This document shows positions 1 to 56,974 of a DNA stretch of 64,000 nt, piece by piece (within the stretch, counting starts at the first letter, position 1; every line of letters begins with the position of its first letter). The stretch spans positions 1 to 64,000 of the IMG/VR virus record IMGVR_UViG_3300042359_000853. One strand, 5' to 3'. Below the pieces are notes generated by a model. That model saw only the letters and a program-made list of their open reading frames with translations. It was not told the DNA's origin and did not search any database. The translations under genes were made by a program, and so were the position numbers.

Positions 1-224
1 ACAAACTTTACAAGGCTGTTTCAAGATAGAATATAAGTTTCTACTATAAATCCACCATCATAATACCTCAATATTTCCCAGATAATGGATTTTCCATATA
101 TATGAAAATCTTCCCCTTCATCTGAGCCCCCAAGATAAATCATTACCATTTCCAAAAAAAATAACACCACTCATATCTCTTGACCCTACAGGATAACTCA
201 TTATTTAGCTGATCCAAAGTAGTG

Positions 225-322
225 AAATTTCTTAAAAAGATATAAAGGGATAAAATCTTTCCTAGGTAAAACAGGTGTTGATATAAAAATAATAACATTT
301 ATTTCCATATATACTCTATATG
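225..322 (+). repeat. Direct repeat copy A (upstream/promoter region of ORF 320)
   Basis: aaatttcttaaaaa-gat..aagggataaaatc..ggtgt..atatata..tatatg aligns with 1781..1880; aagggataaaatc is exact at 245..257 and 1802..1814. Confidence 0.75.
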
Positions 323-1699
323 AAATACTTGAAAACATACGAGAGTTTTAGAATCCTTAATGAGGAAATATTTGGTCTTTTCGGGTCTAATAATGGTCAG
401 AAGAGATATAAAAAATTAGAAGATAAAGATCTAATTAGTTTTATCCAAGACAACTCTAAGGAATTGGAGGGTAAATTTTCGGTCCCTTGGAAGACAAACT
501 TAATACAAAATATTTCTAATAAAGACGAAATTATAAAAATATTAAATGATATAAAAAATGAGAGTAGCTTAGATGGATTTATAAGTGACCTAGAGCTTAG
601 TAAAAACATCAAATTAAAATCAGTAGAAAAAGATCCATCACAGGAAAAAAAAGATGAACCTCAACCCTCTAAAGAAAAAGAAAATACTAATTTACAAGAT
701 ACAGAATTAAGAACTTTTTTAGAAAAATGGAAGGTAGAGTGGGAAAATATAATAGGGGAAGGAATTAATGAAAAATATATTAATGGGTTATATAATTTCT
801 TAAAATGGGAACCAGAGTTTCAAAATGGTTTACTTAAAGGTGAAAGTATGGGGCCGGATGAAACAGATAGATCAATAAATTTCTTAAAATTAATACAAAA
901 ATATAACCCACAATCATTAAAAGAAAAATTAGATATAATTAATAAAAAAAGGGAAGAACTTTTTAAAGAAATAAAAAAATATTTACCTAATTTTAATATC
1001 GATGATCCCAAAACTCACGAAAAATTTTTTAAAGCCAGCAATGATAAACCCTATATGAGATTAGAAGATTTTTTAGAAAATCTTAACCTTTTTACTAAAA
1101 ATGAATATTCCTCCCCAATAAATAAAAAATTAGAATTCATTTCAGAAAAATTAGAAAAATTTTCATTTGGCACGGATGTTAAAAAATTAGGGATTGATAT
1201 TTTAAGAGATAAAAAACTTATAGTTGATAGAAATGGTTTTGTTACCTATCACGGATCTGATAGGGATAACTATGGCGATGATAAATTTGCTTCTACAATT
1301 AACTTTAAAAAAAGAAAAGGATTAGGGTTATTTACATCAGATTTAAAAACAGCAATACAATATGCTATAGCTCAAACTAAAGGGGGGATGGCAGGATCTA
1401 AAGCTGAAGAAGGTGATAAAGTTACGATTTATCGTATTGTATTAAATAGTAAACCATTTCTATTGGGTAATGAAAATGAAGTCTCTTTCAGTGAGATGAA
1501 GGTATTATTAGATTTTGGTTTTGGTGGTTTAGATGGTATAGGTCAAACCGATAATGAAAGAGAAATTATTATAGTAACTCCTGATGCTATCGAAGGGGCC
1601 GAACTGATAAGTCAAGGTGATGACGAATTTGGTAAGATTCTCAAGATGGCCGAACAAAAAGGGGGAGGACATCGGGTTTCTGGGAAAAAAATGGACTAG
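320..1699 (+). CDS. Putative head-packaged protein with C-terminal ADP-ribosyltransferase-like domain
   Basis: N-terminus MKYLKTYESF..LNEE. C-terminal motifs VTYHGS, GLGLFTSDLKTAIQYA and NEREIIIVTP fit the H-Y-E pattern of ART folds. Confidence 0.5.
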   Translation: MKYLKTYESFRILNEEIFGLFGSNNGQKRYKKLEDKDLISFIQDNSKELEGKFSVPWKTNLIQNISNKDEIIKILNDIKNESSLDGFISDLELSKNIKLKSVEKDPSQEKKDEPQPSKEKENTNLQDTELRTFLEKWKVEWENIIGEGINEKYINGLYNFLKWEPEFQNGLLKGESMGPDETDRSINFLKLIQKYNPQSLKEKLDIINKKREELFKEIKKYLPNFNIDDPKTHEKFFKASNDKPYMRLEDFLENLNLFTKNEYSSPINKKLEFISEKLEKFSFGTDVKKLGIDILRDKKLIVDRNGFVTYHGSDRDNYGDDKFASTINFKKRKGLGLFTSDLKTAIQYAIAQTKGGMAGSKAEEGDKVTIYRIVLNSKPFLLGNENEVSFSEMKVLLDFGFGGLDGIGQTDNEREIIIVTPDAIEGAELISQGDDEFGKILKMAEQKGGGHRVSGKKMD

Positions 1700-1780
1700 T
1701 AGCGTAGGTAAAAAAATTTCCAAAAAGTTCTTACATGGAAGTCTTGGCCGGAAAATTTTCTAAAAAAAGGGGGTCAAAAA

Positions 1781-1880
1781 AAATTTCTTAAAAAAGATGC
1801 GAAGGGATAAAATCCTTTTTTGGGTAGGAAGTGGTGTAATGAAAAAATGATTTAATCTTTTTCAATATATATACTATATG
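1781..1880 (+). repeat. Direct repeat copy B (upstream/promoter region of ORF 1878)
   Basis: Same motif order and spacing to the ATG as 225..322. Confidence 0.75.
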
Positions 1881-2348
1881 AAAAAGATTAAATCATTTGT
1901 AGAGCACATCAAGGAAGATTTAGATGTATCTACTAGGCAAAGAGCTTTTCAAGAGCTCGAGAATAGAGTAAAAAGCTTAAAAAATTTCGAGCTCGATCGT
2001 AAGCTCCGGCAGCTTAGTAATATCTACCGTAGTCTTTCTGGCAGCTCAAATGCTCTTAAAGACGAGTTACAAAATTATATACGGGAAGTTTTAGGAGTTC
2101 CTAGAGCTGAAATACTCTCACGTAATCTTAGTATTAGAGGCGTAGGTAATCATACTGTTGAGTTTATTGTAAGGGATGGTGAAAGATCTATTCTATTACA
2201 CCTGATTGTAAAGCCTAACGGATATCGCGTAGGTGGTACATCTAGTAAAGATTTCTTAGATAGATGTGAGAATGATATACAATTTTGGGAGTTAGTAGAT
2301 AATCTAGCCCAGGGTATTCAGGAGAATGATATTTATTTGGAAAAATAA
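1878..2348 (+). CDS. Hypothetical protein with N-terminal MKKIKSFVEHIKE peptide
   Basis: 156 aa ORF; ATATATA box just upstream of the ATG. Confidence 0.75.
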   Translation: MKKIKSFVEHIKEDLDVSTRQRAFQELENRVKSLKNFELDRKLRQLSNIYRSLSGSSNALKDELQNYIREVLGVPRAEILSRNLSIRGVGNHTVEFIVRDGERSILLHLIVKPNGYRVGGTSSKDFLDRCENDIQFWELVDNLAQGIQENDIYLEK

Positions 2349-2431
2349 TTTCAAAAAAACCATATAAAACACTTAAAGACATTTAGGCAACTGGACAAAG
2401 AGACCTCTATTGAAGTAAATATTATCAGGTT

Positions 2432-2698
2432 TTATATGCCTAATATTTGATCGATTTTTTCATCTCTTACCTTTGAGAACTTCTTGAAGTTCTTCATTTC
2501 ACGGGTAATTACAAATAATGAAAGGGGAAATCTTCTACCGCTCTTGTTATATAACACTACCATACCAAATGCTATAGGATCATTTTGGTAGCCAGTATAT
2601 TCTTTGAATTGGACCAAATCACCCCTCTTCAATGGTCCGACCAGCATATCTCTTCCTTGGTAGATGAGAGTTTCACCGGGTATAAATTTATTTTCCAT
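2432..2698 (-). CDS. Small hypothetical protein, paralog array member 1 (C-term RDEKIDQIL)
   Basis: Shares GETLIYQG / LKRGDLVQF / RDxKIxxIL layout with neighbours. Confidence 0.75.
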   Translation of the reverse strand: MENKFIPGETLIYQGRDMLVGPLKRGDLVQFKEYTGYQNDPIAFGMVVLYNKSGRRFPLSLFVITREMKNFKKFSKVRDEKIDQILGI

Positions 2699-2936
2699 GT
2701 TCCAATATATCGTTTATTTTGCTATCTCTTACTTTCCAATCCCTTATGAAATAACAAACATCTTGACTAGGTATATAACTTACATTTTTACTCTGTGTAT
2801 ATCTTGATACATACATACCTCCACTTTGAAAGTATTGGATAAACTCTACACGTTCCCCTTTTTTAAGTGTAGTATAAGGTCCTAGTGTCTCTCCTATGAA
2901 AATGAGGATTTCTCCAGTTATGAACTGATGTGACAT
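2688..2936 (-). CDS. Small hypothetical protein, paralog array member 2 (C-term RDSKINDIL)
   Basis: GEILIFIG / LKKGERVEF; TATATTTG box 15 nt upstream. Confidence 0.75.
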   Translation of the reverse strand: MSHQFITGEILIFIGETLGPYTTLKKGERVEFIQYFQSGGMYVSRYTQSKNVSYIPSQDVCYFIRDWKVRDSKINDILEHGK

Positions 2937-2950
2937 ATCTAAATTTTTTA

Positions 2951-2958
2951 CAAATATA
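2951..2958 (-). promoter_or_regulatory. Bacteroidota-type -7 promoter element TATATTTG
   Basis: Matches TAnnTTTG consensus, upstream of ORF 2936(-). Confidence 0.65.
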
Positions 2959-2963
2959 GTTAT

Positions 2964-3218
2964 TTATTTTTGGATTTCTTCAGGGGGTAGTTCTAATATT
3001 TGCGAGATTTTTTCATCTCTTAACTCTTGAATAGTTTTCAAAAAGCAGTCGTCGATAGTGTATAGTTGGTTGGGTTCCCCAATGAGTTCAACCAAAAGCC
3101 TTTTTCCCCGACCGAGGGTATGAAAAAGAACTTCTCTTAATATCACTCGCCGACCTGGTGGAAACCCATTTAATCTTGCTGTTTTGTCTCTCAGTATCAA
3201 TATATCACCTGTTTTCAT
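2964..3218 (-). CDS. Small hypothetical protein, paralog array member 3 (RDEKISQIL)
   Basis: GDILILR / PPGRRVIL / RDEKISQIL. Confidence 0.75.
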   Translation of the reverse strand: MKTGDILILRDKTARLNGFPPGRRVILREVLFHTLGRGKRLLVELIGEPNQLYTIDDCFLKTIQELRDEKISQILELPPEEIQK

Positions 3219-3486
3219 TATCTAATAGAATATTTATTTTTTTTGATCTCCATTCAGATAAGCTGATAAACAATTCAGGTGTAAAAAACTCATCTAAAAG
3301 TTCAAATCCTTGAGGATGAACTTCCCGTCCTACCTGATACACCATTAAATATTGTTTTGCGCTGTGAGTTTTGAGCCTCATCCACTTTCCGAAAAAAATA
3401 ACCTTATCACCGTATTTAAGGTAGGGTGGCTCGTTGATATCTTGACCGATATAAACGATAACATCTCCTCTAAGGGGGGAGTTCAC
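3205..3486 (-). CDS. Small hypothetical protein, paralog array member 4 (RSKKINILL)
   Basis: GDVIVYIG / LKYGDKVIF; GTG start. Confidence 0.7.
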   Translation of the reverse strand: MNSPLRGDVIVYIGQDINEPPYLKYGDKVIFFGKWMRLKTHSAKQYLMVYQVGREVHPQGFELLDEFFTPELFISLSEWRSKKINILLDNENR

Positions 3487-3510
3487 TACTGCTAGTAGGA
3501 AGAATATAGC

Positions 3511-3876
3511 TCATAGTTCTTCCCTGTTTTGGTCGGTTTGGTTACCATCATCCCCTTCATCGGATAGAAGATCTCTTAGCTTACACTCTCTAATGGCTTG
3601 AGTTACTATTTCATCAGAAGCAAATTTAACGTCGTGACCACGGGAATCACAACTATAGACTAATTTACCATCACTAGAATAGTATTCTCTACTCCAAAAT
3701 CCATTAGAATCTCTGAGTAGGTAATTTCTTCCGAGATGATCCCAAAACCATCTAGTGCAAGTACCATCTTCTTCTTCTCTGTAAATAAGTTGGTGGTGCT
3801 CGTTTTGGATATCAAGATTACCATTCACCGAGAAATCCCAATCGAGTAGTTCAGATATTTTAGGCCACGGATTCAT
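3511..3876 (-). CDS. Hypothetical protein with short beta-hairpin-like repeats
   Basis: REEEDGTCTRWFWDHLG / RDSNGFWSREYYSSDG / SCDSRG periodicity; C-term RECKLRDLL. Confidence 0.6.
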   Translation of the reverse strand: MNPWPKISELLDWDFSVNGNLDIQNEHHQLIYREEEDGTCTRWFWDHLGRNYLLRDSNGFWSREYYSSDGKLVYSCDSRGHDVKFASDEIVTQAIRECKLRDLLSDEGDDGNQTDQNREEL

Positions 3877-4301
3877 TTTTGTGGAATTGTAATTATAGTG
3901 CCGCTTTTAAGGCCAAGCTCCCTAGCTAAGTGCCAACAAGAATCTGCCTGGGTCAGGTCACCTTGAACATGGTGGATACTTCCAAGCAGTAGCAAGGCCT
4001 CTGGTGTTGGATACCAAATAAGTGTTTGCTCGACAAGAGCTCTAGCTTCGGTGTATCTACGTTCATAAACCATTTTTTGAGCTCTTACTAAATTTTGAAT
4101 GATTAAATCTGTGGTGAAGTTAAATTTTTCATAAGTAAGTTGACGGGCCAGTGGAGGTATCGTATCCTTGGGTTTTTGTAGAGATGTTGAATCTTCACGT
4201 TTCTCGCGACCCCGCTCGGTATAGATACGAAATCTCGAACCTTGATAGCAAGAGACAAGTAGTAAAAATGAATAGAACAGAAGTGGTAAGAATTTTTTCA
4301 T
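3873..4301 (-). CDS. Putative lipoprotein with TPR-like helices
   Basis: MKKFLPLLFYSFLLLVSC signal and lipobox; YTEARALVEQTL..PEALLLLGSIHHVQGDLTQADSCW TPR pattern. Confidence 0.6.
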   Translation of the reverse strand: MKKFLPLLFYSFLLLVSCYQGSRFRIYTERGREKREDSTSLQKPKDTIPPLARQLTYEKFNFTTDLIIQNLVRAQKMVYERRYTEARALVEQTLIWYPTPEALLLLGSIHHVQGDLTQADSCWHLARELGLKSGTIITIPQK

Positions 4302-4957
4302 GATGGGTCTTGGGATAATATTCTATTTATTCTAGTTTCTCTTCTAAGTTGTAGAGGCATTACTTTTTCTATCATTCGCATAAAAGCTGCTCTTCTAGCC
4401 TCTTCATAACTTTGGAATCTAGGTATTCCATTGAAAAGTTCCGATTTTCTTTGATCCAGAAATTCACGGACTGAACTTTTCATATTCGTCACATGAAAAG
4501 TAAAAAGTTGAATATTAGGCATCCAATCAACTGAATATTTTAGGTAGTGAACTTCTCTGAACCACCAATCGGCAAGTGCGTAAGTGGGGTAATATTCAGA
4601 GTTACCCAAAAAACCAACTTCTTTGAGCTGTTCAAGTAGATCGCTCTCGATCATATCGACTGGTTTGAGTGGCATGTTGTAATTAGAGAGAGAGAGGAGA
4701 TGGTGAGTAAAATGAGATAAGAGGTAGTAAGAACTACCTAAACCTAATAGAGTTGCTAGATTGAAATTTTTCTGGGGATCCTCGTAGCAGGTTATTCCCA
4801 GCATGATGATGGTGATTAGAAGGCTCAAGAGGTCAAAAGCGGGGATATCCCTACCGAATCTTCCGAAAAAAAGATATTCCACGAGTCCAAAAACAAAAAC
4901 AAGTAGGTAAAGTGCTCGTAAATTGGTGAAATGCTCCCGTGATAGAAATCTTTTCAT
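4298..4957 (-). CDS. Membrane protein (N-terminal TM helices; C-term RETRINRIL)
   Basis: Three hydrophobic segments in the first 90 aa. Confidence 0.65.
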   Translation of the reverse strand: MKRFLSREHFTNLRALYLLVFVFGLVEYLFFGRFGRDIPAFDLLSLLITIIMLGITCYEDPQKNFNLATLLGLGSSYYLLSHFTHHLLSLSNYNMPLKPVDMIESDLLEQLKEVGFLGNSEYYPTYALADWWFREVHYLKYSVDWMPNIQLFTFHVTNMKSSVREFLDQRKSELFNGIPRFQSYEEARRAAFMRMIEKVMPLQLRRETRINRILSQDPS

Positions 4958-5739: not shown

Positions 5740-7314
5740 ATGAAACAAAAATTATTACTACTTCTCTTTCTACTAGTAAGTAGTCTGTCGGAAGCTCAAA
5801 ATCTAGTAGATACCGTAAGAACGAATATCACTACCAACACAACCTGGAGACGGGATAGAATTTATCTTATCGAAGGCTATCGGTTTGTAAAAGATGGAGC
5901 TACTCTAACAATCGAGCCAGGCACTACTATTAGAGGTGATAAAGCTTCGAAAGGCACACTTATTATTACAAAGACCGGAAAGATCCTAGCCAACGGAAAT
6001 GATACAATGCCTATTGTATTTACCTCGAATCAACCACAAGGAACTAGAACTTATGGTGACTGGGGAGGTATCGTAATCCTGGGAAACGCACCTATCAATG
6101 TTCCTGGTGGCATAGGTATTATCGAAGGTGGTCTTCTTGGGCAAGATGCTACTTATGGGGGAAATAACCAAGATGATAGTTCAGGAGTTTTTAGGTATGT
6201 TCGTATTGAATACCCAGGCATCGCCTATCAGCCAAACTCTGAAATAAACGGATTAACTCTCGGTGGTGTAGGTCGTAAAACACAAATCGATCACATACAA
6301 GTTAGCTATTCTGGTGATGATGCCTTTGAGTGGTTCGGTGGAAATGTAAATTGTAAATACCTAGTAGCACACAGAGGTTGGGATGACGATTTTGATACTG
6401 ATTTTGGATATTCTGGAAAGGTTCAATTCGCCTTATCAATGAGAGACCCAAATATTTCAGACCAATCCCAATCCAATGGACTTGAGTCTGATAACGATGG
6501 AACCGGAACTTTTAATACACCCTTTACTTCACCTCTATTTTCTAATGTAACTATTATTGGACCTAGAGAGGGTGGTAACCCGGCTTCACTCTACCGTAGA
6601 GCTATGCATCTTCGTAGAAATACCAGAACTTCTATCTATAACTCTCTTTTTACTGGTTATACAACTGGTCTTCATATTGATGGACAAGCATCTCAAGCAG
6701 CAGCTACTCTCGATAGCCTTCAGCTAGAACGTGTTATACTCTGTAATATGCTAAATAACTTCGAGCAAACATCTGGTCAAAATACCTGGCAAGGTATGAA
6801 CTCCTATTTTTTAGATTCAACTCGTCAGAACCAAATTATTGATAGCACATTTCGATTGGGTCTTCGCCCGGGTTACGCAAACTTGGGTAGTCCAGACCTC
6901 GTGCCAGATTCAGGAAGTTTATTGTTGAGTGGTGCTAATTTTACAAATCCCCGATTGAGTGATGGATTTTTTGATACCGTGAGTTTCATTGGCGCTTTTG
7001 GCCTAGTAGATTGGACTAGGGGCTGGTCAAATTTCAATCCAGATACCGTTCATACCTCTGTAGAAGTCGTAAATCGAACCGTAACAAGGGTTTATCCGAA
7101 CCCAGTTACACAAGGTCTATTTACTATTCAGTTAGATGAACTTCCACAAGATGTGCGTGTATTCGATATTCGTGGTAGGGAGGTTCAATCTTCATGGAGT
7201 CAGATCTCTGAAGATGCCATCCGAGTATCTCTGGATACAAATAAAGTTGGTCTAATGACCGTTCTTATTCAAGATAAACTTTCCTTAAAGATATCCAGAA
7301 TAGTAGTTCGGTAA
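5740..7314 (+). CDS. Secreted beta-helix-like protein with T9SS type A C-terminal sorting domain
   Basis: Signal peptide MKQKLLLLLFLLVSSLSEA. Core DDSSGVFRYVRIEYPG..EINGLTLGGVG..DDAFEWFGG resembles a Bacteroidota surface-protein family. C-term VYPNP..VRVFDIRGREV..KISRIVVR. Confidence 0.75.
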   Translation: MKQKLLLLLFLLVSSLSEAQNLVDTVRTNITTNTTWRRDRIYLIEGYRFVKDGATLTIEPGTTIRGDKASKGTLIITKTGKILANGNDTMPIVFTSNQPQGTRTYGDWGGIVILGNAPINVPGGIGIIEGGLLGQDATYGGNNQDDSSGVFRYVRIEYPGIAYQPNSEINGLTLGGVGRKTQIDHIQVSYSGDDAFEWFGGNVNCKYLVAHRGWDDDFDTDFGYSGKVQFALSMRDPNISDQSQSNGLESDNDGTGTFNTPFTSPLFSNVTIIGPREGGNPASLYRRAMHLRRNTRTSIYNSLFTGYTTGLHIDGQASQAAATLDSLQLERVILCNMLNNFEQTSGQNTWQGMNSYFLDSTRQNQIIDSTFRLGLRPGYANLGSPDLVPDSGSLLLSGANFTNPRLSDGFFDTVSFIGAFGLVDWTRGWSNFNPDTVHTSVEVVNRTVTRVYPNPVTQGLFTIQLDELPQDVRVFDIRGREVQSSWSQISEDAIRVSLDTNKVGLMTVLIQDKLSLKISRIVVR

Positions 7315-12050: not shown

Positions 12051-13928
12051 ATGAAAAAAGACGTAATCATCGGTATTGACCTAGGAACAACTAACTCAGC
12101 GGTAGCTATTGTTGAGGCGGGAGATTCAGTGATCATTCCAAACTCTGAAGGCCGCAGAACAACACCATCGGTCGTTGCCTTCACCGATAAAGACCGAAGA
12201 ATCGGAGATCCTGCTAAAAGACAAGCAGTGACCAATCCCCAAAAAACCATCTACTCTATTAAGAGATTTATTGGTAAGAGCTGGGCAGCATCGAAAGACG
12301 AAGCTGGCAAAGTTCCCTACACGGTGAAATCAAGCTCAAACTCTACACCCGTCGTATCGATTGATGATAGAGATTATACCCCTCAAGAAATCTCAGCGAT
12401 GATCCTTCAGAAAATGAAAAAAACCGCCGAAGATTATCTAGGTTACGAAGTTACACGAGCTGTTATTACCGTTCCTGCTTACTTCGGAGATGCCGAAAGA
12501 GGCGCAACGATGGAAGCCGGTCAAATCGCTGGGCTTAAAGTCGAGAGGATTATCAACGAACCTACAGCAGCTGCCCTGGCCTATGGTTTAGATAAAAAAG
12601 GTCAAGACTCAAAAATCTTGGTTTTCGACTGCGGAGGTGGAACCCACGACGTATCAGTTCTTGAAATTGGTGATGGTGTATTCGAGGTAAAATCAACCGA
12701 TGGTGATACCCATCTAGGTGGTGATGACTTTGATAATGCGATCATTGCCTGGATGACCGGTGAGTTCAAAAGTGACACTGGTATCGATCTAACGAAAGAT
12801 CCAATGGCATTACAACGACTGAAAGACGCAGCTGAAAAAGCAAAGATCGAACTTTCTTCTTCACTTTCAACCGAGGTCAATCTTCCCTATATTACGGTGA
12901 AGGATAACGTTCCTCAACACTTTGTGAAATCTCTTACCCGTGCTAAGTTCGATCAACTTACCAAATCACTCGTTGATAGAGCAGTGGCCTGTGCGAAAAG
13001 TGCTCTAAAATCTGCTGGTCTTAAGCCAAGTGAGATTGATGAAGTAGTTTTAGTAGGTGGTTCTACTCGCATTCCAGCTATTCAAGATGCTGTCGAGAGT
13101 TTTATTGGTAAAAAAGCCAATAAATCTGTAAATCCAGATGAAGTCGTAGCAATGGGAGCAGCTATTCAAGGTGCTGTTCTTACCGGTGATGTTAATGATG
13201 TTCTTCTACTAGACGTTATTCCACTCTCGTTCGGTATTGAAACCATGGGTGGTGTAATGACCAAACTTATCGAGGCCAACACAACTATTCCAGTAAGAAA
13301 GCAGCAAACTTTCTCAACAGCTGCTGATAATCAAAACTCAGTTGAAATCCACGTTCTTCAAGGTGAAAGGCCGATGGCATCAGATAACCGTTCGATAGGC
13401 AGGTTCCATCTTGATGGTATTATGCCAGCTCCGAGGGGTGTTCCACAAATCGAGGTTAGTATTGATATCGACGCTAATGGTATCCTAAGTGTTAAAGCTC
13501 AAGATAAAGCTACTGGTAAAGAAAACAAAATTCGTATCGAAGGTGGTTCTTCTCTAACACCAGAGGAAATCCAACGTATGAAAGACGAGGCTATTCAGAA
13601 CGAGGCTGAGGATAAACGTAAGATGGAAACTGCCGAGCTTGTCAATAAGTGTGATACTCAAGTATTCACTACTAAAAAATCACTCGAAGAGTGGAAGGAC
13701 AAGTTTACACCCGAGCAGCTAGAAGAGCTTCAAAAACTGGTCGGCCAGCTCGAAGAGGCTCTCTCTCAACGAGACGAGACTAGGATGAAAGAAGCTTCGT
13801 CTTCTCTTGAGTCGACTTTCTCCAAAATTTCTACCGAGATTTATTCTAAAATCAGTAGTGAAGAAGGTTCTAGTTCAAGTGGTGTAGAAGATGTAGAATA
13901 TACAACGGTTGAAGATCAAGACAAGTAA
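12051..13928 (+). CDS. dnaK: Chaperone DnaK (Hsp70)
   Basis: [61 protein letters not shown]. Confidence 0.98.
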
Positions 13929-28351: not shown

Positions 28352-29274
28352 AATTTATTTTGTTTAAGAAATTCGAGTGCTATTTGAGATTCGTTTTGAT
28401 TTTTGAATCCATGATAGAATAATACTTCACTTGAGTTTCGACAATACGTATATCCATCTTCTTCAAGGTAGGTATCTAAAATATTCGGATCCATTTCAAC
28501 TTTTTTAAGTATTTCACTTTTATGAGTATTTACAAAAATTGTTTCATAATTTTTTTCAACACTTCTTCTCCAAAGAATGATATTTATTGCTGTTTCCTCG
28601 TGAAAAGGTAGATATTCTTTACCTCTTCTTCGTATCCAGGGATTTTCTATGAGTGATTTCCATTCTAAAATAAAATCTTCACACTTTTCACCAAAACTAA
28701 TTACACAGGTTCCAACATATCTCATCGATCTTTTTTTAACACCGAAAAGACACATAAGTGCTGCTTCGTTGTAGATAATTGTCCCAGGTGTTCCGGTAAC
28801 CCTACCATCAATATCGACTTCAACAGCTAGTCTTTCTTGACCATCAGATCCAATGTATTTCAATGTAGGATTCCATATTTTAGCTTTGGAGTAATGTGGT
28901 CCAAAAATTATTGGAAAAGAATGGGATATTGTCGTGAGGAGAGGATAGTCCTCATCATTTTCAAAATAGTCGATATTAAATCTTTTACCGACAAGAATAT
29001 CACAATCCATGAACAAAAAATCACCACCAAAATGATTTAATGCGTGAAATAAAATAGCTGGTTTATAAAAATAAAAATCAGTGCCGTATTCTTTTACTGG
29101 TTCAAAATATTGACATATAAGATTTGGATAGTCAAGTTGTGATTCAAATCCAATTGTATAATATATTATAGGTATAGTATAATTGGTTCTTATTATTATA
29201 GACTCAACGAGATTTTTAGCTTGAAATTCATAATTTTTATCGGAAAGAATAATAATTTTTCTTGAATTTTTCAT
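28348..29274 (-). CDS. GT-A-fold glycosyltransferase-like protein
   Basis: YFYKPAIL..FLFMDCDI (DxD)..HEETAIN..LFYHG. Confidence 0.6.
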   Translation of the reverse strand: MKNSRKIIILSDKNYEFQAKNLVESIIIRTNYTIPIIYYTIGFESQLDYPNLICQYFEPVKEYGTDFYFYKPAILFHALNHFGGDFLFMDCDILVGKRFNIDYFENDEDYPLLTTISHSFPIIFGPHYSKAKIWNPTLKYIGSDGQERLAVEVDIDGRVTGTPGTIIYNEAALMCLFGVKKRSMRYVGTCVISFGEKCEDFILEWKSLIENPWIRRRGKEYLPFHEETAINIILWRRSVEKNYETIFVNTHKSEILKKVEMDPNILDTYLEEDGYTYCRNSSEVLFYHGFKNQNESQIALEFLKQNKL

Positions 29275-31589
29275 ATCAATCCATTTTGTTTTAGTTTTTC
29301 AAAAATAAATTCTGGTTCAATTGTTCTAGTACATTCAAACCATTTTGTTGAACCTTTATGTTCCGGACACCAAGTCCAGTCACCTGGATCGAATTTCCAG
29401 TCAGTTGTTTTAGTGAAACAAGAATTACATACTTGTTGGTTTTGTATTCTTATAATGTCTTGTGTAAATTCGTTGTCAGCAGAGGTAACTCCTGATATCA
29501 TAACTACTTCTTTCCCAAGTGCGTGAGCAACCCAAGAAAGACCAGAAGAAACTCCAATAAAAAATGCAGAATGTTGTATAATATTCACTACTTCATCGAA
29601 ACTTAGTCCTGTTTTACGAACCGAGGAATGAGGTAAAGAATTCCACCAACCTTCAATTCCAAAAACTTCGTGAAGATCCACCGCAACTGGTATTAAATCG
29701 ATTTTTCTCAACATTTTTGATAAAATTTCCCATCCGTTGGGATAGTTCCAATATTTACACTGGGAGGTAGATTGAACCCCTAGGCAAACATATTTGTCCC
29801 TAATAGGTCTTGGTAATTTAGATCTTTTGATGAGTGGTCTGAGTTCTTTATATTCAAGTTCAAGTTGATCTGAAAAACCTTTCATGACCGGTCTATCAAA
29901 TTTGTAATCAAGATAAATTATATTAGTAAAGTTTTCATCAAAATGTTCTTTTTTCTCTAATAAATTCAGGTTTGGAAAATCCGAAGGATCGAAAATATCT
30001 ACACCTTTCACGTAAAGATCACACACTATATTTTTCATCAGTGCGAATTCTTGAGCATACCTTACTGAAACTATTTTATCACCAAGAGCATCACTATTAG
30101 AGACAATAATAGTTTTTTGAGAAATTTTTTCTTTTTGATTAAAATAATCTAGAAGTTGTCGTTCGTTCAAGGAGTAATAAAACCCGTTTTCGTCGGCTTG
30201 AGAATCAATTTGAACACCATCAATGTAGTAATTTTTTCTAGTTTTTATGGTAAGATAACATCTAGTTTTTTCAACAAAAGATTTTACAGTATCTGGTTCT
30301 AGATCGAAACTCTCGATAACAAGCAAAATACGCTTATTTTCAAGAGAAAGTTCTTCTTTATGTAAAATTTTGGATCCCTCTTTTACCTCAACAACCCATT
30401 CTATAAATTCTCCATCTCTAAATGCTGAAGACCATATGTTTGTTGATTTTTTCGTAAGACTATGGTATATGACTCTTCCTGTTTTCTTATCACTAAAAAC
30501 AACAGTCCCATCAAAAGAAAAACCTACTTTACAAAAAGCTCTTCTAGATGAAAAATTTATAATGATTCCCTTGGTGTCGGGAGTAGACCTAGATGTCTTT
30601 TTAATTTTGTTGTAATTATATAAAAGTTGATCTCTTTCACTCACTTGGTAGAATTTTTTATAATTTTGGATCATTCTACCAACTACCAAATCCCAAGAAA
30701 AACTTAGACGATTATCAATAATTTGGTTGGTCAAGCTATCGTATTTCTTGAAAGCATTCCCAATCGCCTTCTCTAAAGAATCTATCTCTGGGGAGCAATT
30801 TATTAGTCCAGGTAAAGATTCATTGCAAACCCCAACAACTGGCATACCCACAGATAAAGCTTCTAGAATTGTTAAATTTGGATGACCAGCTTCTAAATTA
30901 GAAGGATGCAAAAATAACTGGTAATTTTTCATTCTATCAATAGATTCTTTGTAATCTAAATCATATAGAATAGTTAAATTTTTGTAATCTGGTTTCCAGA
31001 AATCAAAGAAAGTTTGATTACTGGATGGGCACATGATATGAATTTCGAAGCCGAACTTTTTAGCACATTCGATACCTAACAAAAAACCCTTTCTATCTAT
31101 GGTTCTGTCGCCACCCATACCATTATTTGCCATCATCAATAATTTTGGGTTATCTATACGAACTTTCTCGGATCTATCAATTAAGGGATAGTCTTCTAAA
31201 TTTACACCGTGTGGGAGATATACTATTTGTTCGAGTTCGTCGAAATATTTTATCAAATGTTTTGAGTGCACAAATGTAAGCTTCGAATTTTTAATAGCCC
31301 TGTAATTTTCTTTATAAACCGCTGAATCTTTTCCGAAATACTCTACGTGATGATCATGTAGGGAAAAAACATAAGGGATCCCCTTTTGATATAAAATATT
31401 TGCCAAATTGGCCATGTGAACATGTATAATTTGACCATGCCTATATTGTATATCATCAAGATAAAGAATTTCTACCTCATACCCGAGTTTCTCTAGTGAG
31501 AGTTTATATTCCCAGATTATTTTTTCAACCGCACCCCATCCATTTGGTGGTATGGGTATATTACCAGGTGTTACTTGAATTATCTTCAT
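29271..31589 (-). CDS. GT4 glycosyltransferase fused to autotransporter-heptosyltransferase-like (TibC/Aah-type) domain
   Basis: N-term GWGAVEKIIW..EAGHPNLTILEALSVG (GT4); C-term SDALGD, QSTSQCKYWN..GW, GVSSGLSW, CNSC..WCP..FEC. Confidence 0.75.
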   Translation of the reverse strand: MKIIQVTPGNIPIPPNGWGAVEKIIWEYKLSLEKLGYEVEILYLDDIQYRHGQIIHVHMANLANILYQKGIPYVFSLHDHHVEYFGKDSAVYKENYRAIKNSKLTFVHSKHLIKYFDELEQIVYLPHGVNLEDYPLIDRSEKVRIDNPKLLMMANNGMGGDRTIDRKGFLLGIECAKKFGFEIHIMCPSSNQTFFDFWKPDYKNLTILYDLDYKESIDRMKNYQLFLHPSNLEAGHPNLTILEALSVGMPVVGVCNESLPGLINCSPEIDSLEKAIGNAFKKYDSLTNQIIDNRLSFSWDLVVGRMIQNYKKFYQVSERDQLLYNYNKIKKTSRSTPDTKGIIINFSSRRAFCKVGFSFDGTVVFSDKKTGRVIYHSLTKKSTNIWSSAFRDGEFIEWVVEVKEGSKILHKEELSLENKRILLVIESFDLEPDTVKSFVEKTRCYLTIKTRKNYYIDGVQIDSQADENGFYYSLNERQLLDYFNQKEKISQKTIIVSNSDALGDKIVSVRYAQEFALMKNIVCDLYVKGVDIFDPSDFPNLNLLEKKEHFDENFTNIIYLDYKFDRPVMKGFSDQLELEYKELRPLIKRSKLPRPIRDKYVCLGVQSTSQCKYWNYPNGWEILSKMLRKIDLIPVAVDLHEVFGIEGWWNSLPHSSVRKTGLSFDEVVNIIQHSAFFIGVSSGLSWVAHALGKEVVMISGVTSADNEFTQDIIRIQNQQVCNSCFTKTTDWKFDPGDWTWCPEHKGSTKWFECTRTIEPEFIFEKLKQNGLI

Positions 31590-31597
31590 AAAGGAAA

Positions 31598-34500
31598 TTA
31601 TTTATTCGGAATCTGAACAGTATCTCGTAAATCTTTGGATTTTCCGCTAAAAACTACTCTGTTTTGATATACAACTTCCCACGACAATAGAGAACCATCT
31701 ACTATATTCCAGGACCAAGAGGATTCATAATTTGCTAATTCTTGTTCTAAAATTTCTTCTCGACCATCATCATATACTAATATAAATTTTATTCCAATAT
31801 TATTGTTCGTAAGATTTCTAGAGAAGAACATAAAGTTATCTGAATTTTCAACTCTGTAAACACCCGTGAAGAAATCCTTGAAATTATTAGAAAAATTAGA
31901 GATAGAGGCCTCTGTATTCCAAATAGTATCTGTTAAAATACTATCCATAATTCTACCATTATGTATTTTCAATTCTTTCGGGTTTGTTTTTTCAAGAAGT
32001 CTTCTAAATAACACTTCTACAGTTACAAAATCTCTACTATGCCACTTTTTTTGTATAAAATCTAAGTAATCACTCTCTTTACTAAATTTTGGTATTGTAT
32101 CTAAAAAATAATCAATATTCCAGAACTGAAGATGAAAAGATATGTTATTTTCTTCAGTTTCTGTGGATTCATCGTAGTCGTTAAAAAATAACACCGCTTT
32201 TTGGTCATTACTCTCCATTTCAAGTGCGATATCATAGATTTTATCTAGTGAACGATTACCATATAGATCGTCACATTCAATTCTCACCACATTTGTGTAT
32301 CCGAGTGATTTTGCTAAGCTCATTGCGTTATGAAAATTTACCATTACAGATAAACCGTGTTTTTGAACACCTTTTGTAAAATTTTTCAGAGTGAAAATCC
32401 ATTTACTTTCAAGAGAGACATAATCATTTATAATTATTTCTTTAACATTTGAATATTCTTCACGAAATAATTGATTTCTACGATCATAGTAAAAAAAATC
32501 AACCATTTGTTGTATTTCTCTATCAATTGTTGTATTAGATACTAACATCAAATCAAATCCTCTAATTTTGAACCTTTCGATCTGCTGAATTAGTCTTTCT
32601 TTCACTCTTCTACTTGATACATAACTATCTAAAATTACTAGAGTTTTTTCTAGACCTTTTATTTGGATATCAGTTTTTGTTAATTCTTTATCCCCATGAA
32701 TATTTTTTGATATGAAAACCACACCTTTTTCCTGTGAAGTGCCGTTTATCAGAGTTTTACAATCTTCTTCAAAAATTTGATACTGGTATCCAAGCTTAAT
32801 GATTCTCAAAATTATTTGATTTCTAAGTATATCTTCAAAGTTATCGTGGAACTCTAATATAATATTCTCTATCTTGAGTAAATTCTGATCAGAAAGACCC
32901 TCGAAGGCTTTATATTCACTACCTTCGATGTCCATTTTCATGAGAGAGACTTTCTCAATACCAGAATCAGCAAAAAAGCTATCTAAGTCTATTGATGAAA
33001 TTTCGAAATGTTTATCGGTGATATTGATGGCAGAGCTAATAATTGAATTGTTTTGATCTTCATAGATTTTTATCTTTTCTTTTTTATCCCAAACAGCGTT
33101 TTTTACAAGACTAACTCGTGAATCCTCACCGTGTAAATTATTAAATACCTTGACTGCTTTATCAGAAACCTCAAAAGCTATTACTTTTTTTGCTCCTTTA
33201 TCTTTTGCTAATTCCGTGAATAGTCCAATAGAACTACCAACATCTAAAATCAGATCAAGTGAGTTTATACTAGAAAGAAATTGATCATAAATTCTATCTG
33301 TAAAAAATTGTTCGAAATTTACAAAAATAGGTTCATAAGTATCGATTCTAAACTTTTTTTTCTGAACATTAATCATCTTTATCTGATATGATTGAGAATA
33401 TAGTAAATTTCCACCATGATCGTAGAAATCAATAAGAAATCCTGAGAAATTTGGATTTTCTGAAAAATCATAATAGGATTTTGGTAGTGGTATTGCCCAA
33501 TAATTATTTTTATTTTCGAATTTTGCATCAAATGAAAAAATAGGAATTTGAGTATCCATATCTCTAATACAAACCATCATATCGAAAGGAAGGTCATGTA
33601 AATAATTTAGAGTCAATTTATTATCTGAACTATCAAAGTCAATATCAAATAATTTTTGGTTGAAAAATTCTGGTTTGATTAGTGTGTAGTTGTTTAATAA
33701 GTCTAGCATAGAGTATAATATTTTTGAATTTTCTTCTAAATCTTGGACCATCCATTTCAATTTCGAAGATTCTGTGTAGGTGTTCATATAGACGGGTATA
33801 TTTCTGAGAAAAAGTGGTATTTCCCAAGCGATGGCTTCTTTTATAGCAAGTGGGTTCGTTTCAGTATCACCATATCTACCTTCTGATGGGAAAATTACGG
33901 CATCCATACAAGAGTAAAAAGTATGAACATCGCTTCTTTCCCTCCAAATTTGACAATTTGGTGGTTTATTATCAATCAAATCTTGCCAATGACCCCTATA
34001 ATTATCAGGAAGAGCTCCAACAAAATGAAACTGAACATCAGGCATTATTTTTGCTAGGGAGAAGGTAAATCGTTGATTTTTTCTATTAGAGAAAAGTCCT
34101 ACTTGAAGAACATGCCTTTTTGTAGGATCGAGTCCTAATGTTTTCATACCTAATTCCCTATTTCTCTCACCGGTCGTAATTTCATGCTCGATAATTTCGA
34201 TGGGAATCCCAAGAGGTAGGAAATTTTTGACTTGCCACAGACTCACAACAAGCATCTTATCTGGTAGATACTTTTTCTCACGATGATCGATCGACGAGTC
34301 ATGAAGTGTTTCAAATATTTTCCAAGTTCTTGATGGTGAATATATTTTATCTAGTAATGGATGTGGCAGAAAATGGTCTGAAGTTTCTTCGAAATGAACC
34401 ACATCAGGTGAAATTTTCTGTAATAAGGTAAAAAGTTTTTTATAATTTTGATCGAGTGAAACCAATCTCGAACCAATCATCCCCTCTATTTTTTCTCGAA

Positions 34501-34636
34501 TCGTCGTATATTGTTTTTCATATACTAATTCGAAAACCCATACTTCGTTGTCTGTGTGTAATAGTTCTACTTTTTTTCTTAAATACTCTGGCATTCCACC
34601 AGTAGAAAGATGTGGTGTAATATAAACTATTTTCAT
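31598..34636 (-). CDS. Multidomain GT4 glycosyltransferase + FkbM methyltransferase + C-terminal domain
   Basis: HLSTGGMPEY, ETNPLAIKEA (GT4); LDVGSSIG..AFEV..LMKMDIEGSE (FkbM); start at MKIVY. Confidence 0.8.
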   Translation of the reverse strand: MKIVYITPHLSTGGMPEYLRKKVELLHTDNEVWVFELVYEKQYTTIREKIEGMIGSRLVSLDQNYKKLFTLLQKISPDVVHFEETSDHFLPHPLLDKIYSPSRTWKIFETLHDSSIDHREKKYLPDKMLVVSLWQVKNFLPLGIPIEIIEHEITTGERNRELGMKTLGLDPTKRHVLQVGLFSNRKNQRFTFSLAKIMPDVQFHFVGALPDNYRGHWQDLIDNKPPNCQIWRERSDVHTFYSCMDAVIFPSEGRYGDTETNPLAIKEAIAWEIPLFLRNIPVYMNTYTESSKLKWMVQDLEENSKILYSMLDLLNNYTLIKPEFFNQKLFDIDFDSSDNKLTLNYLHDLPFDMMVCIRDMDTQIPIFSFDAKFENKNNYWAIPLPKSYYDFSENPNFSGFLIDFYDHGGNLLYSQSYQIKMINVQKKKFRIDTYEPIFVNFEQFFTDRIYDQFLSSINSLDLILDVGSSIGLFTELAKDKGAKKVIAFEVSDKAVKVFNNLHGEDSRVSLVKNAVWDKKEKIKIYEDQNNSIISSAINITDKHFEISSIDLDSFFADSGIEKVSLMKMDIEGSEYKAFEGLSDQNLLKIENIILEFHDNFEDILRNQIILRIIKLGYQYQIFEEDCKTLINGTSQEKGVVFISKNIHGDKELTKTDIQIKGLEKTLVILDSYVSSRRVKERLIQQIERFKIRGFDLMLVSNTTIDREIQQMVDFFYYDRRNQLFREEYSNVKEIIINDYVSLESKWIFTLKNFTKGVQKHGLSVMVNFHNAMSLAKSLGYTNVVRIECDDLYGNRSLDKIYDIALEMESNDQKAVLFFNDYDESTETEENNISFHLQFWNIDYFLDTIPKFSKESDYLDFIQKKWHSRDFVTVEVLFRRLLEKTNPKELKIHNGRIMDSILTDTIWNTEASISNFSNNFKDFFTGVYRVENSDNFMFFSRNLTNNNIGIKFILVYDDGREEILEQELANYESSWSWNIVDGSLLSWEVVYQNRVVFSGKSKDLRDTVQIPNK

Positions 34637-34703
34637 GTTATTTTTATATCCCATATCCTGTAATAGTTTTTGTAAACAAATAACAAATTAAATATATACT
34701 ATA

Positions 34704-56158: not shown

Positions 56159-56974
56159 ATGAAAAAAAAGGGTGTTTTTTGTATTTGGGGAGGAAGTTTC
56201 AGAAATTCATATAATAGCTATGAAAGTTTCACTAAAAATAATATTCTTGAAAAGCAATTTGTGGCATCACAATCTCAGATCAATTTTCTAAAATCACTTT
56301 TATCGGAAATTGATATATGTCTAATCATAATCACCTACAAAAATGAGTTTTCTGATTTTTTATTTAGCTGGTACAAAGATTTTAATCCACTAATAATCTT
56401 GATTGAAAAACCCATAGGATTTATTAAATTATCGAAAAAAGTTCCTCAATTAGTATCAAGATACGGTAGTGACTTTTATTTTTTTATAAGAATAGATTTG
56501 GTTTTGAAATCCAAATTGTTAGACATAATTCATTTTCCGGAGAAAAAAATCGTTTGTCCATTTATATGTTATATAGGGGGACATGAGCACATAGTTTCAC
56601 CATTTCCTTCACATCTACCCCAGTATAAAAAAAATATTATTCCTAGTGAAAAAACACGTTCAAGACCGAGTGACTTGATCATGTATGTTTGTTCTAAATT
56701 CAAAAGTGAACTAGCAAGCTCAAAAATATGGCTCAATCATGATTTTACTCTGCACATAAACTATGATATCTATAAACAAATTGATTATTACATCGACACC
56801 TTTCACGACAGCAATACATCAGGAGATAGAAATCCACTTTTCTACATTTGTAACAGAGATGAAGAATTGATGTGGAAATCAGAATTTTTTTGCCATACAG
56901 GTGATGGCCAACCAGAAATGAATTATGAAAAAAATTTCAACAAAATCTTCGTAAAAGATTACCCACTAATCTAG
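56159..56974 (+). CDS. Glycosyltransferase-like hypothetical protein
   Basis: FFIRIDL..RPSDLIMYV..DTFHDSN; borders glycosylation island. Confidence 0.45.
   Translation: MKKKGVFCIWGGSFRNSYNSYESFTKNNILEKQFVASQSQINFLKSLLSEIDICLIIITYKNEFSDFLFSWYKDFNPLIILIEKPIGFIKLSKKVPQLVSRYGSDFYFFIRIDLVLKSKLLDIIHFPEKKIVCPFICYIGGHEHIVSPFPSHLPQYKKNIIPSEKTRSRPSDLIMYVCSKFKSELASSKIWLNHDFTLHINYDIYKQIDYYIDTFHDSNTSGDRNPLFYICNRDEELMWKSEFFCHTGDGQPEMNYEKNFNKIFVKDYPLI

Follow-up and report, generated by a model that had tools for sequence, protein, structure and literature searches.

The stretch of DNA considered here, referred to as the window, comprises positions 1-64000 (64,000 nucleotides, nt) of the 227,583-bp IMG/VR record IMGVR_UViG_3300042359_000853 (G000). 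Close to its left end lies an open reading frame (ORF) for an orphan protein of 459 amino acids (aa), which is bracketed by two homologous upstream modules of about 100 bp, R1 and R2, the second of which leads into a gene for a 156-aa protein. Both gene products begin with the same type of short N-terminal leader, and related contigs differ from the window at this place by whole leader-bearing genes. Cassette variation at the locus is real, and the locus constitutes a variable array sharing an upstream-plus-leader module. Its features are as follows (coordinates of the window; + denotes the plus strand):

225..322 (+): R1, upstream module of the 459-aa gene through its ATG; 85-87% kept in the relative L093 (665-776)
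307..313 (+): ATATATA promoter-like element, 7 nt upstream of the ATG of the 459-aa gene
320..1699 (+): gene (ORF) of the 459-aa orphan protein with an N-terminal leader, a helical middle and a C-terminal domain resembling ADP-ribosyltransferases (ARTs)
320..427 (+): leader module, MKYLKTYE (8 aa) inside a 36-aa conserved N-terminal block, which also starts a 48-aa remnant and a 273-aa gene in L093
1217..1639 (+): C-terminal domain, residues ~300-440, with the candidate catalytic residues H311 (1250-1252), F338 (1331-1333), D405 (1532-1534) and E415 (1562-1564)
1700..1780 (+): 3' flank of the 459-aa gene with repeated AAAWTTTC-type words (family D4); kept in the relatives L002 (4828-4901), L005 and L093
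1781..1880 (+): R2, upstream module of the 156-aa gene, with a small hairpin and then a T-run at about 1802-1822 and the ATATATATA element at 1865-1873; 94.6% kept in L093 (2775-2954)
1832..1911 (+): strong hairpin with 33-nt arms (1832-1864 and 1879-1911, 82% complementary) around the promoter-like element and the ATG of the 156-aa gene
1878..2348 (+): second leader-bearing gene (ORF), 156 aa, MKKIKSFVEH...; orthologue in L093 (2952 onward), not in L002

The repeat pair and the variation of the locus

R1 and R2 align with 75% identity over 101 columns at an E-value of 1e-12 in a blastn search of the whole record, whereas the next best match to the R copies in the genome (E 1.6e-4) is eight orders of magnitude weaker. 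Alignment of 200-325 with 1756-1883 by MAFFT yields a mean column identity of 79%, and a repeat search returned 225-260/1782-1817 with 78% and 286-312/1844-1870 with 74% identity at a spacing of 1557-1558 nt. The homology of the two stretches, which had been proposed in a first-pass annotation of the window, is thereby borne out, as is its observation that both end at the ATG of a leader-bearing gene: R1 runs to the ATG at 320 and R2 to that at 1878, and the similarity extends weakly into the first codons of the respective products, MKYLKTYESF and MKKIKSFVEH. Since the core words GGGATAAAAT and TATA[TC][TA]CTATATG occur in two places each in the 227-kb genome, namely R1 and R2, the pair does not represent generic AT-rich similarity, the objection which that annotation had itself raised. 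Unique to the pair is the sequence on the left and in the middle of the repeat. That R1 and R2 belong to a genome-wide promoter family was considered and ruled out, because the core words are confined to the two copies. A weak third look-alike at 95332-95425 and the region upstream of a third leader gene have merely short words in common with them.

The right part of the module contains the ATATATA element, which precedes the start codon by at most 45 nt in 76 of the 230 crude gene calls made for the genome (33% versus the 1.5% that its density predicts, about 20-fold; all gene calls rely on translation table 11 as the sole genetic code), including those of the capsid gene and of a protease-bearing ORF. 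Because it stands in front of a third of the gene calls genome-wide, ATATATA is the general promoter-like element of the phage and not particular to the R1/R2 locus. It recalls the T4 late promoter, and no sigma-70-type -35/-10 site was detected within R1 or R2. The element is often so near to the ATG that the corresponding mRNAs would be almost leaderless.

In R2, the element and the start codon are enclosed by the hairpin at 1832-1911, which pairs the 5' region of the 156-aa gene with its first 11 codons. The RNA fold has a free energy of -37.3 kcal/mol (z -6.2), with none of 200 shuffles being as good, and the hairpin is kept in the relatives L004 and L093; the R1 region is devoid of a comparable fold (z -1.0). 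This structure may gate translation of the 156-aa gene by the transcript start site: in read-through transcripts from the upstream gene the second start codon would be hidden, while in transcripts starting inside the loop it would be free. Such hairpin logic is employed by gene e and soc of T4.

Evidence for a variable array comes from L093. Here, R1 and the first 109 nt of the 459-aa gene remain as a 48-aa ORF, which is 87% identical to window 225-428 and is followed by a gene for a 186-aa product with MKYIKSF at its start, by an abbreviated repeat and then by a 273-aa gene. The latter matches window 294-374 with 94% identity over its first 55 nt and the 26 nt in front of them, marking a further exchange point in this promoter-leader stretch, while its body is different and ART-PolyVal-like. 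The last ~197 nt of the window gene are present without a start (93% identical from window 1503), and the end of the array is formed by R2 and the orthologue of the 156-aa gene. Altogether, other cassettes of ~1.7 kb take the place of 1,074 nt of the gene, R occurs in three copies, and with a fifth leader gene upstream (139 aa, MKWIKLF) there are five leader genes in a row. In L002, on the other hand, an orthologue of 55% identity has the same 248-aa and 42-aa genes as left neighbours and a relative of the 121-aa gene as right neighbour. L002 lacks the 156-aa gene as well as four small minus-strand genes, carries ~1.3 kb extra with other ORFs upstream of the gene, and retains the 3' flank of the 459-aa gene including the left part of R2. 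The four genes missing from L002 (2432-3486, minus strand) are tandem paralogues of 82-93 aa with 31-37% identity, which have G-[ED]-x-[LI] in common towards the N-terminus and R-[DS]-x-K-I-x-x-[IL]-L towards the C-terminus.

The first-pass annotation had regarded the stretch between the repeats as an exchangeable cassette and would have abandoned this view if relatives did not vary; L093 and L002 differ by whole leader genes. Exchangeability therefore stands insofar as leader genes are gained, lost or replaced in both relatives, but the 459-aa gene is no simple unit popping in and out between R1 and R2.

The N-terminal leader

The leader consensus of the locus is MK-x-[IL]-K-[TS]-[YF]. In G000, three genes start with MK-x-[ILVM]-K-[ST]-[FYW] (at 320, 1878 and, on the minus strand, 100446), for which roughly 0.1 matches would be expected by chance. 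The near-identical Joint Genome Institute (JGI) contig L004 encodes, 5 kb upstream of the 459-aa gene (743-2791, minus strand), a 682-aa protein with the N-terminus MKLIKLF and a promoter-like element in front. Beyond the locus, a DNA pattern for MK[YH]LKTY[ED] yielded 70 matches on 63 stretches of IMG/VR, nearly all at ORF starts, where a rough expectation by chance is a few. The leader ORFs of at least 60 aa (58 in all; loci L096-L158) fall into 46 unrelated body clusters, which gives a lower bound of 46 for the unrelated proteins bearing it. These proteins are mostly ORFans of 60-282 aa from dozens of viral contigs, many of which measure 150-675 kb; the ten longest bodies are ORFans, with DUF5824 in one. 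Tandem rows of leader genes occur in L100, L121, L123, L141, L143 and L151, and in L100 the unit repeated ahead of each gene measures ~35-40 nt and consists of promoter-like sequence plus leader. Leader genes in IMG/VR (e.g., L100:778, 1134 and 1433) are each preceded by a AAATATAATAT-type element. A gp23-type capsid exceeds the cut-off in four of ten large leader-holding records, including three of the four with a completeness of at least 90%. Neither MKYLKTY nor MKHLKTY was found as a string in the literature searched.

Among the leader variants (MKYLKTY, MKKIKSF, MKRIKTF and MKWIKLF), residue classes are kept while codons differ. Glu at leader position 8 is invariant, h-x-E sites are visible at 12-15, and further glutamates follow in L-N-E at 13-15 of the 459-aa protein and in I-K-E at 11-13 of the 156-aa protein. 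A similar arrangement is known from T4, where the internal head proteins and Alt enter the prohead by means of a capsid-targeting sequence (CTS) that is cut after Glu, in Alt at I-T-E-6 (PMC5694885, PMC3012670). In the T4 record, ipII and ipIII both start MKTYQEFIAE and have ~70 nt upstream in common, while ipI starts MKTFKEF. Because of the resemblance to the T4 CTS and the presence of head genes in the genome, the leader may be understood as a capsid-targeting and cleavage signal. Most likely, it would direct the protein into the prohead, where a gp21-type protease would cut it off after the glutamate. What speaks against this assignment is that an [LIVMFA]-x-E site beyond the leader is present in only about half of the leader proteins.

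Among the competing explanations, the one that survives best denies the leader any role in capsid targeting and assumes that its first ~25 nt are kept for a function at the RNA or DNA level, be it the translation start of near-leaderless mRNAs or homology for recombination. It accounts well for a promoter-like element that abuts the ATG and would leave mRNAs with almost no 5' untranslated region, for the repeat unit of L100, which covers promoter and leader alike, and for the leader codons that form one arm of the R2 hairpin, but it does not predict that the variants retain residue classes with differing codons. Moreover, it has to face the resemblance to the T4 CTS in genomes with a T4-type capsid, G000 additionally holding a below-threshold Peptidase_S77-like stretch. 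We consider such a nucleic acid-level role a serious contender, albeit one that is probably wrong.

The capsid-targeting interpretation can be extended to a wider proposal, namely that MK[YH]LKTYE serves as a portable address label across a clade of uncultured large T4-headed phages, whose carriers would be loaded into the capsid, trimmed after Glu and ejected. In this general form the proposal is speculative and rather unlikely to hold. If true, however, the tag would mark the phage 'injectome' in sequence data, that is, dozens of unrelated ORFan effectors including new ART-like enzymes, and the tagged effectors would sit in arrays reshuffled through a common promoter-leader module.

The 459-aa protein and its C-terminal domain

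The 459-aa protein matches no Pfam, PHROG or NCBIfam family, and comparison of the protein and of its family profile with the PDB sequences produced chance-level matches only. For the 156-aa protein there is likewise no significant Pfam or PHROG family. A word search with the 459-aa protein retrieved only the relatives P0002 (83%) and P0003 (55%), and one with the domain profile only family members. In a profile search of 1.84 billion protein representatives the family amounted to seven proteins in total, for which Pfam, PHROGs and NCBIfam scans gave nothing usable. Four of the seven have only the C-terminal ~190 residues in common (E 1e-27 to 1e-43), their N-terminal parts being different. 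Neither tblastn against 50,697 cultured-phage records nor a scan of viral contigs for whole-protein relatives uncovered a relative of the protein. In a freshwater metatranscriptome (run X20), a 215-nt contig is identical to 1338-1552, which belongs to the part coding for the ART-like domain; it may reflect transcription or carried-over DNA.

The motifs pointed out in the first-pass annotation are present: Y310-H311-G312 is encoded at 1247-1255, and GLGLF, QYA and ERE occupy residues 334-338, 347-349 and 413-415, respectively. Within the family, Y310, G312, S313, K331-R332, G336, T339 and Y348-A349 are invariant in the first half of the domain, and Y371-R372-I373, P379-F380, F399-G400, G402-G403, D405-G406, E413 and E415 in the second half. 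F338 is replaced by Tyr in two of the seven members, and H311 is found in six. The ARTs of polyvalent proteins feature a His on strand 1, a Tyr on strand 2 and an Asp on strand 5, and are separate from the R-S-E clade comprising Alt and VIP2 (Iyer et al. 2017, PMC5512222). By alignment, this triad maps to H311, F338 and the invariant D405, which corresponds to the D of G-Y-D-G in members of ART-PolyVal (PF18760). The motif set Y-H-G-S, G-x-[FY]-T and G-G-x-D-G fits the H-Y-D clade of ART-PolyVal.

Profile comparison points in the same direction. Aligned by hhalign with 16 genuine PF18760 members from Bacteroidota genomes and a protein collection, the family matched along 125 co-linear columns that begin at Y-H-G-S and end at the E-x-E strand, with a score of 20.8 (P 0.025) that three of 300 column-shuffled family profiles reached. 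After addition of two L093 paralogues the score rose to 22.1 and was reached by none of 120 shuffles. Over both comparisons, P ranged from 0.015 to 0.025 and the number of co-linear columns from 123 to 125. The family profile and the single L093 cassettes gave short, non-significant stretches only. In a joint MAFFT alignment of both families, the G of G-h-[FY], G-x-D-G and the Glu strand stay in register. Below the threshold of PF18760 there are matches of the family member P0006 (15.6 bits, E 0.029) and of two L093 cassette genes that bear the same leader at the same locus (23.9 and 18.4 bits, E 7.8e-5 and 0.004), for which it is the sole family listed.

At the structural level, a protein atlas holds the exact 459-aa sequence with a low-confidence model (predicted local distance difference test, pLDDT, 0.48). 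The structural neighbours of this model are RES, DUF3990 and ART-PolyVal clusters at a template modelling (TM) score of 0.5-0.66, and in terms of language-model features the named clusters closest to the protein are PARP, Arr-ms, Tox-ART-HYD1 and ART-PolyVal. All named neighbours are ART-fold families, although their scores, all below 0.9, qualify them as leads only. An AlphaFold model from a mixed alignment reached a pLDDT of 63 and a predicted TM score (pTM) of 0.62. Its best PDB matches are almost all of the ART fold (Tpt1-like proteins, diphtheria-toxin homologues, Arr, RES toxins, the A chains of pertussis and cholera toxin, PARPs), and a cyanophage pre-ejectosome chain is also among the matches.

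Several results weigh against the ART assignment. No curated model is over threshold for the 459-aa protein (the gathering score of PF18760 is 31.2 bits), a search for PF18760 in six frames of the genome returned no match, and the 'probability' issued by hhalign is only 2-3%. The candidate catalytic His is replaced by Tyr in P0005, AlphaFold attains a pLDDT of just 40 with the family's own seven sequences, and the matches of the mixed-alignment model are weak, with a Foldseek E of 0.13 or more and a Z of no more than 4.8. Furthermore, this model indicates compatibility only and is not independent, because its alignment already contained ART-PolyVal members. The domain could accordingly be something other than an ADP-ribosyltransferase, either another enzyme of the same fold that uses nicotinamide adenine dinucleotide (NAD+), such as a RES-type NAD+ phosphorylase/NADase, or a non-enzymatic internal protein with chance motifs. 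This explanation profits from the below-threshold results and the poor own-family model, from the RES families among the nearest atlas structures and from a His311 that is not invariant, yet it leaves aside the co-linear match to PF18760 (empirical P about 0.01), the uniformly ART-fold named neighbours in the atlas, the sub-threshold matches of the sister cassettes to the same family and the invariance of D405, G312, S313 and E413/E415. We judge it to be unlikely, though far from negligible. An ART fold, very divergent, is the likelier assignment for the C-terminal domain and has moderate support, whereas active ADP-ribosyl transfer, as predicted from the sequence, is a tentative proposal that falls slightly short of an even chance. 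Hence, of the ART payload suggested by the first-pass annotation, the fold persists as the best available reading, while the activity is only inferred.

Phage background, cassette exchange and comparison with known systems

The window forms the beginning of a jumbo-phage fragment of freshwater origin, the phage having a T4-type head. The IMG/VR record is of the linear class with a CheckV completeness of 39%, and L004, which is 99.96% identical over window 1-4946, extends 7.6 kb to the left of the window start. Because this extension was not found elsewhere in the 227,583-bp record, the latter represents a fragment. Left of the window, L004 carries a weakly HNH_4-like 502-aa gene and a D12-class DNA methyltransferase gene near the 682-aa leader gene. 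G000 encodes a T4-type major capsid protein (Pfam Gp23, 92 bits, E 2.5e-27, over the cut-off; 188090-189460, minus strand), and 2 kb from this gene lies a Peptidase_S77-like stretch of the T4 gp21 prohead protease type (19.1 bits, E 8.4e-5), which is below the curated cut-off. An origin from nucleocytoplasmic large DNA viruses (NCLDV) was ruled out, given the gp23-type capsid and the failure to find an NCLDV capsid in G000.

A full-length DnaK/Hsp70 gene at 12051-13928 on the plus strand (Pfam E 1e-242) is 61-68% identical to DnaK of Bacteroidota (Sphingobacteriales, Flavobacteriales), which account for nearly all of the 80 best loci. The 524-aa protein encoded at 5740-7314 (plus strand) combines a signal-peptide-like N-terminus with a type IX secretion C-terminal sorting domain (25.7 bits; cut-off 27). 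All 18 public runs holding at least half of the sampled words from 1-2600 are lake or freshwater metagenomes. Taken together, the gp23 capsid, the DnaK similarity, the type IX sorting domain and the lake runs argue for a freshwater phage whose host probably belongs to the Bacteroidota. Large glycosyltransferase/FkbM-methyltransferase fusions and a double nucleotidyltransferase at 29271-34654 and 56971-58545 (both minus strand) suggest a sugar-modification module of the phage.

As to how the array varies, the first-pass annotation had assumed gain and loss by recombination between the promoter repeats. This is a fair model for the array, since a promoter-leader module common to the cassettes would allow recombination to exchange their bodies, but no deletion is seen in near-identical populations and the junctions in L093 lie partly inside the gene. 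In L005, a Logan contig of another sample with an 83%-identical orthologue (90% nucleotide identity), the first and last 30 nt are identical. The contig closes to a unit of 1,517 bp that consists of the gene and a single hybrid repeat, which is like R2 on the left and like R1 on the right and lacks the middle. Logan assemblies use a word length of 31, and the overlap of L005 is one less. The self-closing unit could be a tandem duplication, a free mini-circle of the PeSL type or a graph effect of the 30-nt exact repeat.

The case against recombination through the repeats is made by three findings. Two independent lake samples provided contigs that cover 1-2554 and 1-2600 and carry 3-7 substitutions but no joint at the repeats, although assembled contigs cannot exclude rare variants; in the raw reads of run X22 the phage was not found. 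The junctions in L093, at ~428 and ~1503, fall inside coding sequence and not in the repeats, and the long repeat has two copies in 227 kb, unlike the genome-wide PeSL family. A purely regulatory duplication, in which the 156-aa gene would have acquired a copy of the neighbouring promoter, 5' region and first codons for co-expression and no genes would be exchanged, agrees with the low copy number and the structural uniformity of the two lake populations; the genome-wide ATATATA element in both copies and the hairpin over the second ATG, which suggests translational control, can also be claimed for it. It is difficult to reconcile, however, with relatives that differ exactly by leader genes at the locus, with the three R copies and the exchange point 294-374 of L093, with the self-closure of L005 through a hybrid repeat and with tandem arrays of the same promoter-leader repeat in other phages, and is therefore regarded as improbable.

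The shuffling of cassettes is embedded in a more comprehensive explanation, which takes as its basis what is directly observed, namely the repeats, the leader common to the genes, the differing cassettes of the relatives and the type of phage. In this view, the left end of the window would lie in a variable series of small cassettes carried by a T4-headed jumbo phage, each made up of a short upstream module (ATATATA just before the ATG), the conserved leader MK-x-[IL]-K-[TS]-[YF]-E and an unrelated body, with R1 and R2 representing two copies of a longer module version of ~100 bp. Homologous recombination through the common module would result in duplication, deletion or swapping of bodies, in the manner of the promoter-plus-CTS modules of the T4 internal-protein genes and of the PeSL cassettes of RB49/phi1. 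The body encoded at 320..1699 would end in a very divergent domain of the H-Y-D (ART-PolyVal/Tox-ART-HYD2) type with the candidate site H311, F338, D405 and perhaps E415. The protein, packaged into the prohead and trimmed as outlined above, would be ejected with the DNA in its mature form to modify a host macromolecule with NAD+ early in infection. We infer the ART fold, enzymatic activity, packaging, cleavage, injection and target, and the explanation as a whole (shuffling leader-tagged cassettes, H-Y-D ART-like body, prohead packaging and injection) appears about evenly poised between right and wrong.

The first minutes of infection are decided by proteins that enter the host along with the phage DNA, yet outside T4, P1, N4 and phiKZ-like phages such proteins are difficult to identify. 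The combination of a sequence tag with a promoter module is predicted to make candidate host-takeover or anti-defence effectors findable in metagenomes of uncultured jumbo phages. The array may moreover be a concrete case of how phages swap injected effectors, and the putative ART-like domain a highly divergent offshoot of an enzyme superfamily that is of central importance in conflicts between phage and host. The overall design is known from T4 with its CTS-tagged internal proteins, Alt and PeSL cassettes; what is new is this particular leader, the breadth of its occurrence in large uncultured phages and the ART-like orphan family.

With respect to the enzyme, that the 459-aa protein is a homologue of T4 Alt, as the term 'Alt-like' of the first-pass annotation had implied, is highly improbable, for although the invariant E-x-E (413-415) and the T4-type head would suit Alt, BLASTP against it gave a best E of 0.66 and hhalign only 13 columns (P 0.26), and of the R-S-E site pattern only E-x-E is recovered, the first motif being Y-H-G-S and not an Arg strand and K-R lying 7 residues before F-T-S and thus too close, whereas the spacing fits the H-Y-[ED] ARTs, which form a clade separated from Alt (PMC5512222). 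Alt is an ART that is packaged in the T4 head, injected and acts on RNA polymerase. What may be shared with Alt, which has neither sequence nor profile similarity to the protein and belongs to the R-S-E clade, is the proposed lifestyle only: a late-type promoter, an N-terminal propeptide, packaging, injection and NAD+-dependent modification of the host. In addition, alt.-1 and alt.-2 (L092 5066-5451) adjoin alt in T4, whose annotation traces them to an old duplication of the first portion of alt, a parallel to the shared 5' modules described here. The likeness to ART-PolyVal (PF18760) and Tox-ART-HYD2, by contrast, concerns the motif order itself, with [FY]HG[ST], G-h-[FY]-[FT], G-[YG]-x-D-G and E-x-h-h-[VF] and a conserved H/aromatic/D set. 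Members of ART-PolyVal, which occur in polyvalent proteins of phages and conjugative elements, are predicted to be delivered with invading DNA (PMC5512222). Unlike them, the 459-aa protein remains below every hidden Markov model threshold, has seven representatives and features an extra invariant E-x-E; unlike polyvalent proteins, it is a single-enzyme protein with a leader and not a multi-enzyme one.

With respect to the leader, the closest counterpart is the internal-protein system of T4. As in IPI, IPII and IPIII, a short N-terminal leader of the form MK..(K)T[YF].E is attached to unrelated bodies, which in the T4 internal proteins are highly diverse (PMC3012670); as in ipII and ipIII, neighbouring genes share a homologous upstream region; and the genome holds a gp23-type capsid gene and a below-threshold gp21-like stretch. 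On the contrary, the leader reads MK[YH]LKTYE, the bodies range from 60 to about 680 aa, the host is probably a member of the Bacteroidota, and the phage is far larger. The likeness is one of design and not of demonstrable homology.

With respect to the exchange of genes, the array resembles the PeSL cassettes of RB49/phi1 and other T4-like phages, which are promoter-plus-stem-loop modules that reach up to the ATG and flank ORFans and to which the differences between relatives map (Arbiol et al. 2010, PMC2839356; PMC4122927). Recombination between neighbouring PeSL copies can give rise to small circles (PMC2839356). Here, too, intergenic modules reach the ATG beside ORFans, and the 1,517-bp unit of L005 closes on itself with a hybrid repeat, although this circle is only a candidate. 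In contrast to PeSL, R1 and R2 contain no sigma-70 -35/-10 pair, the long repeat is present in two copies and not in dozens, and the shared module reaches into the protein as a leader.

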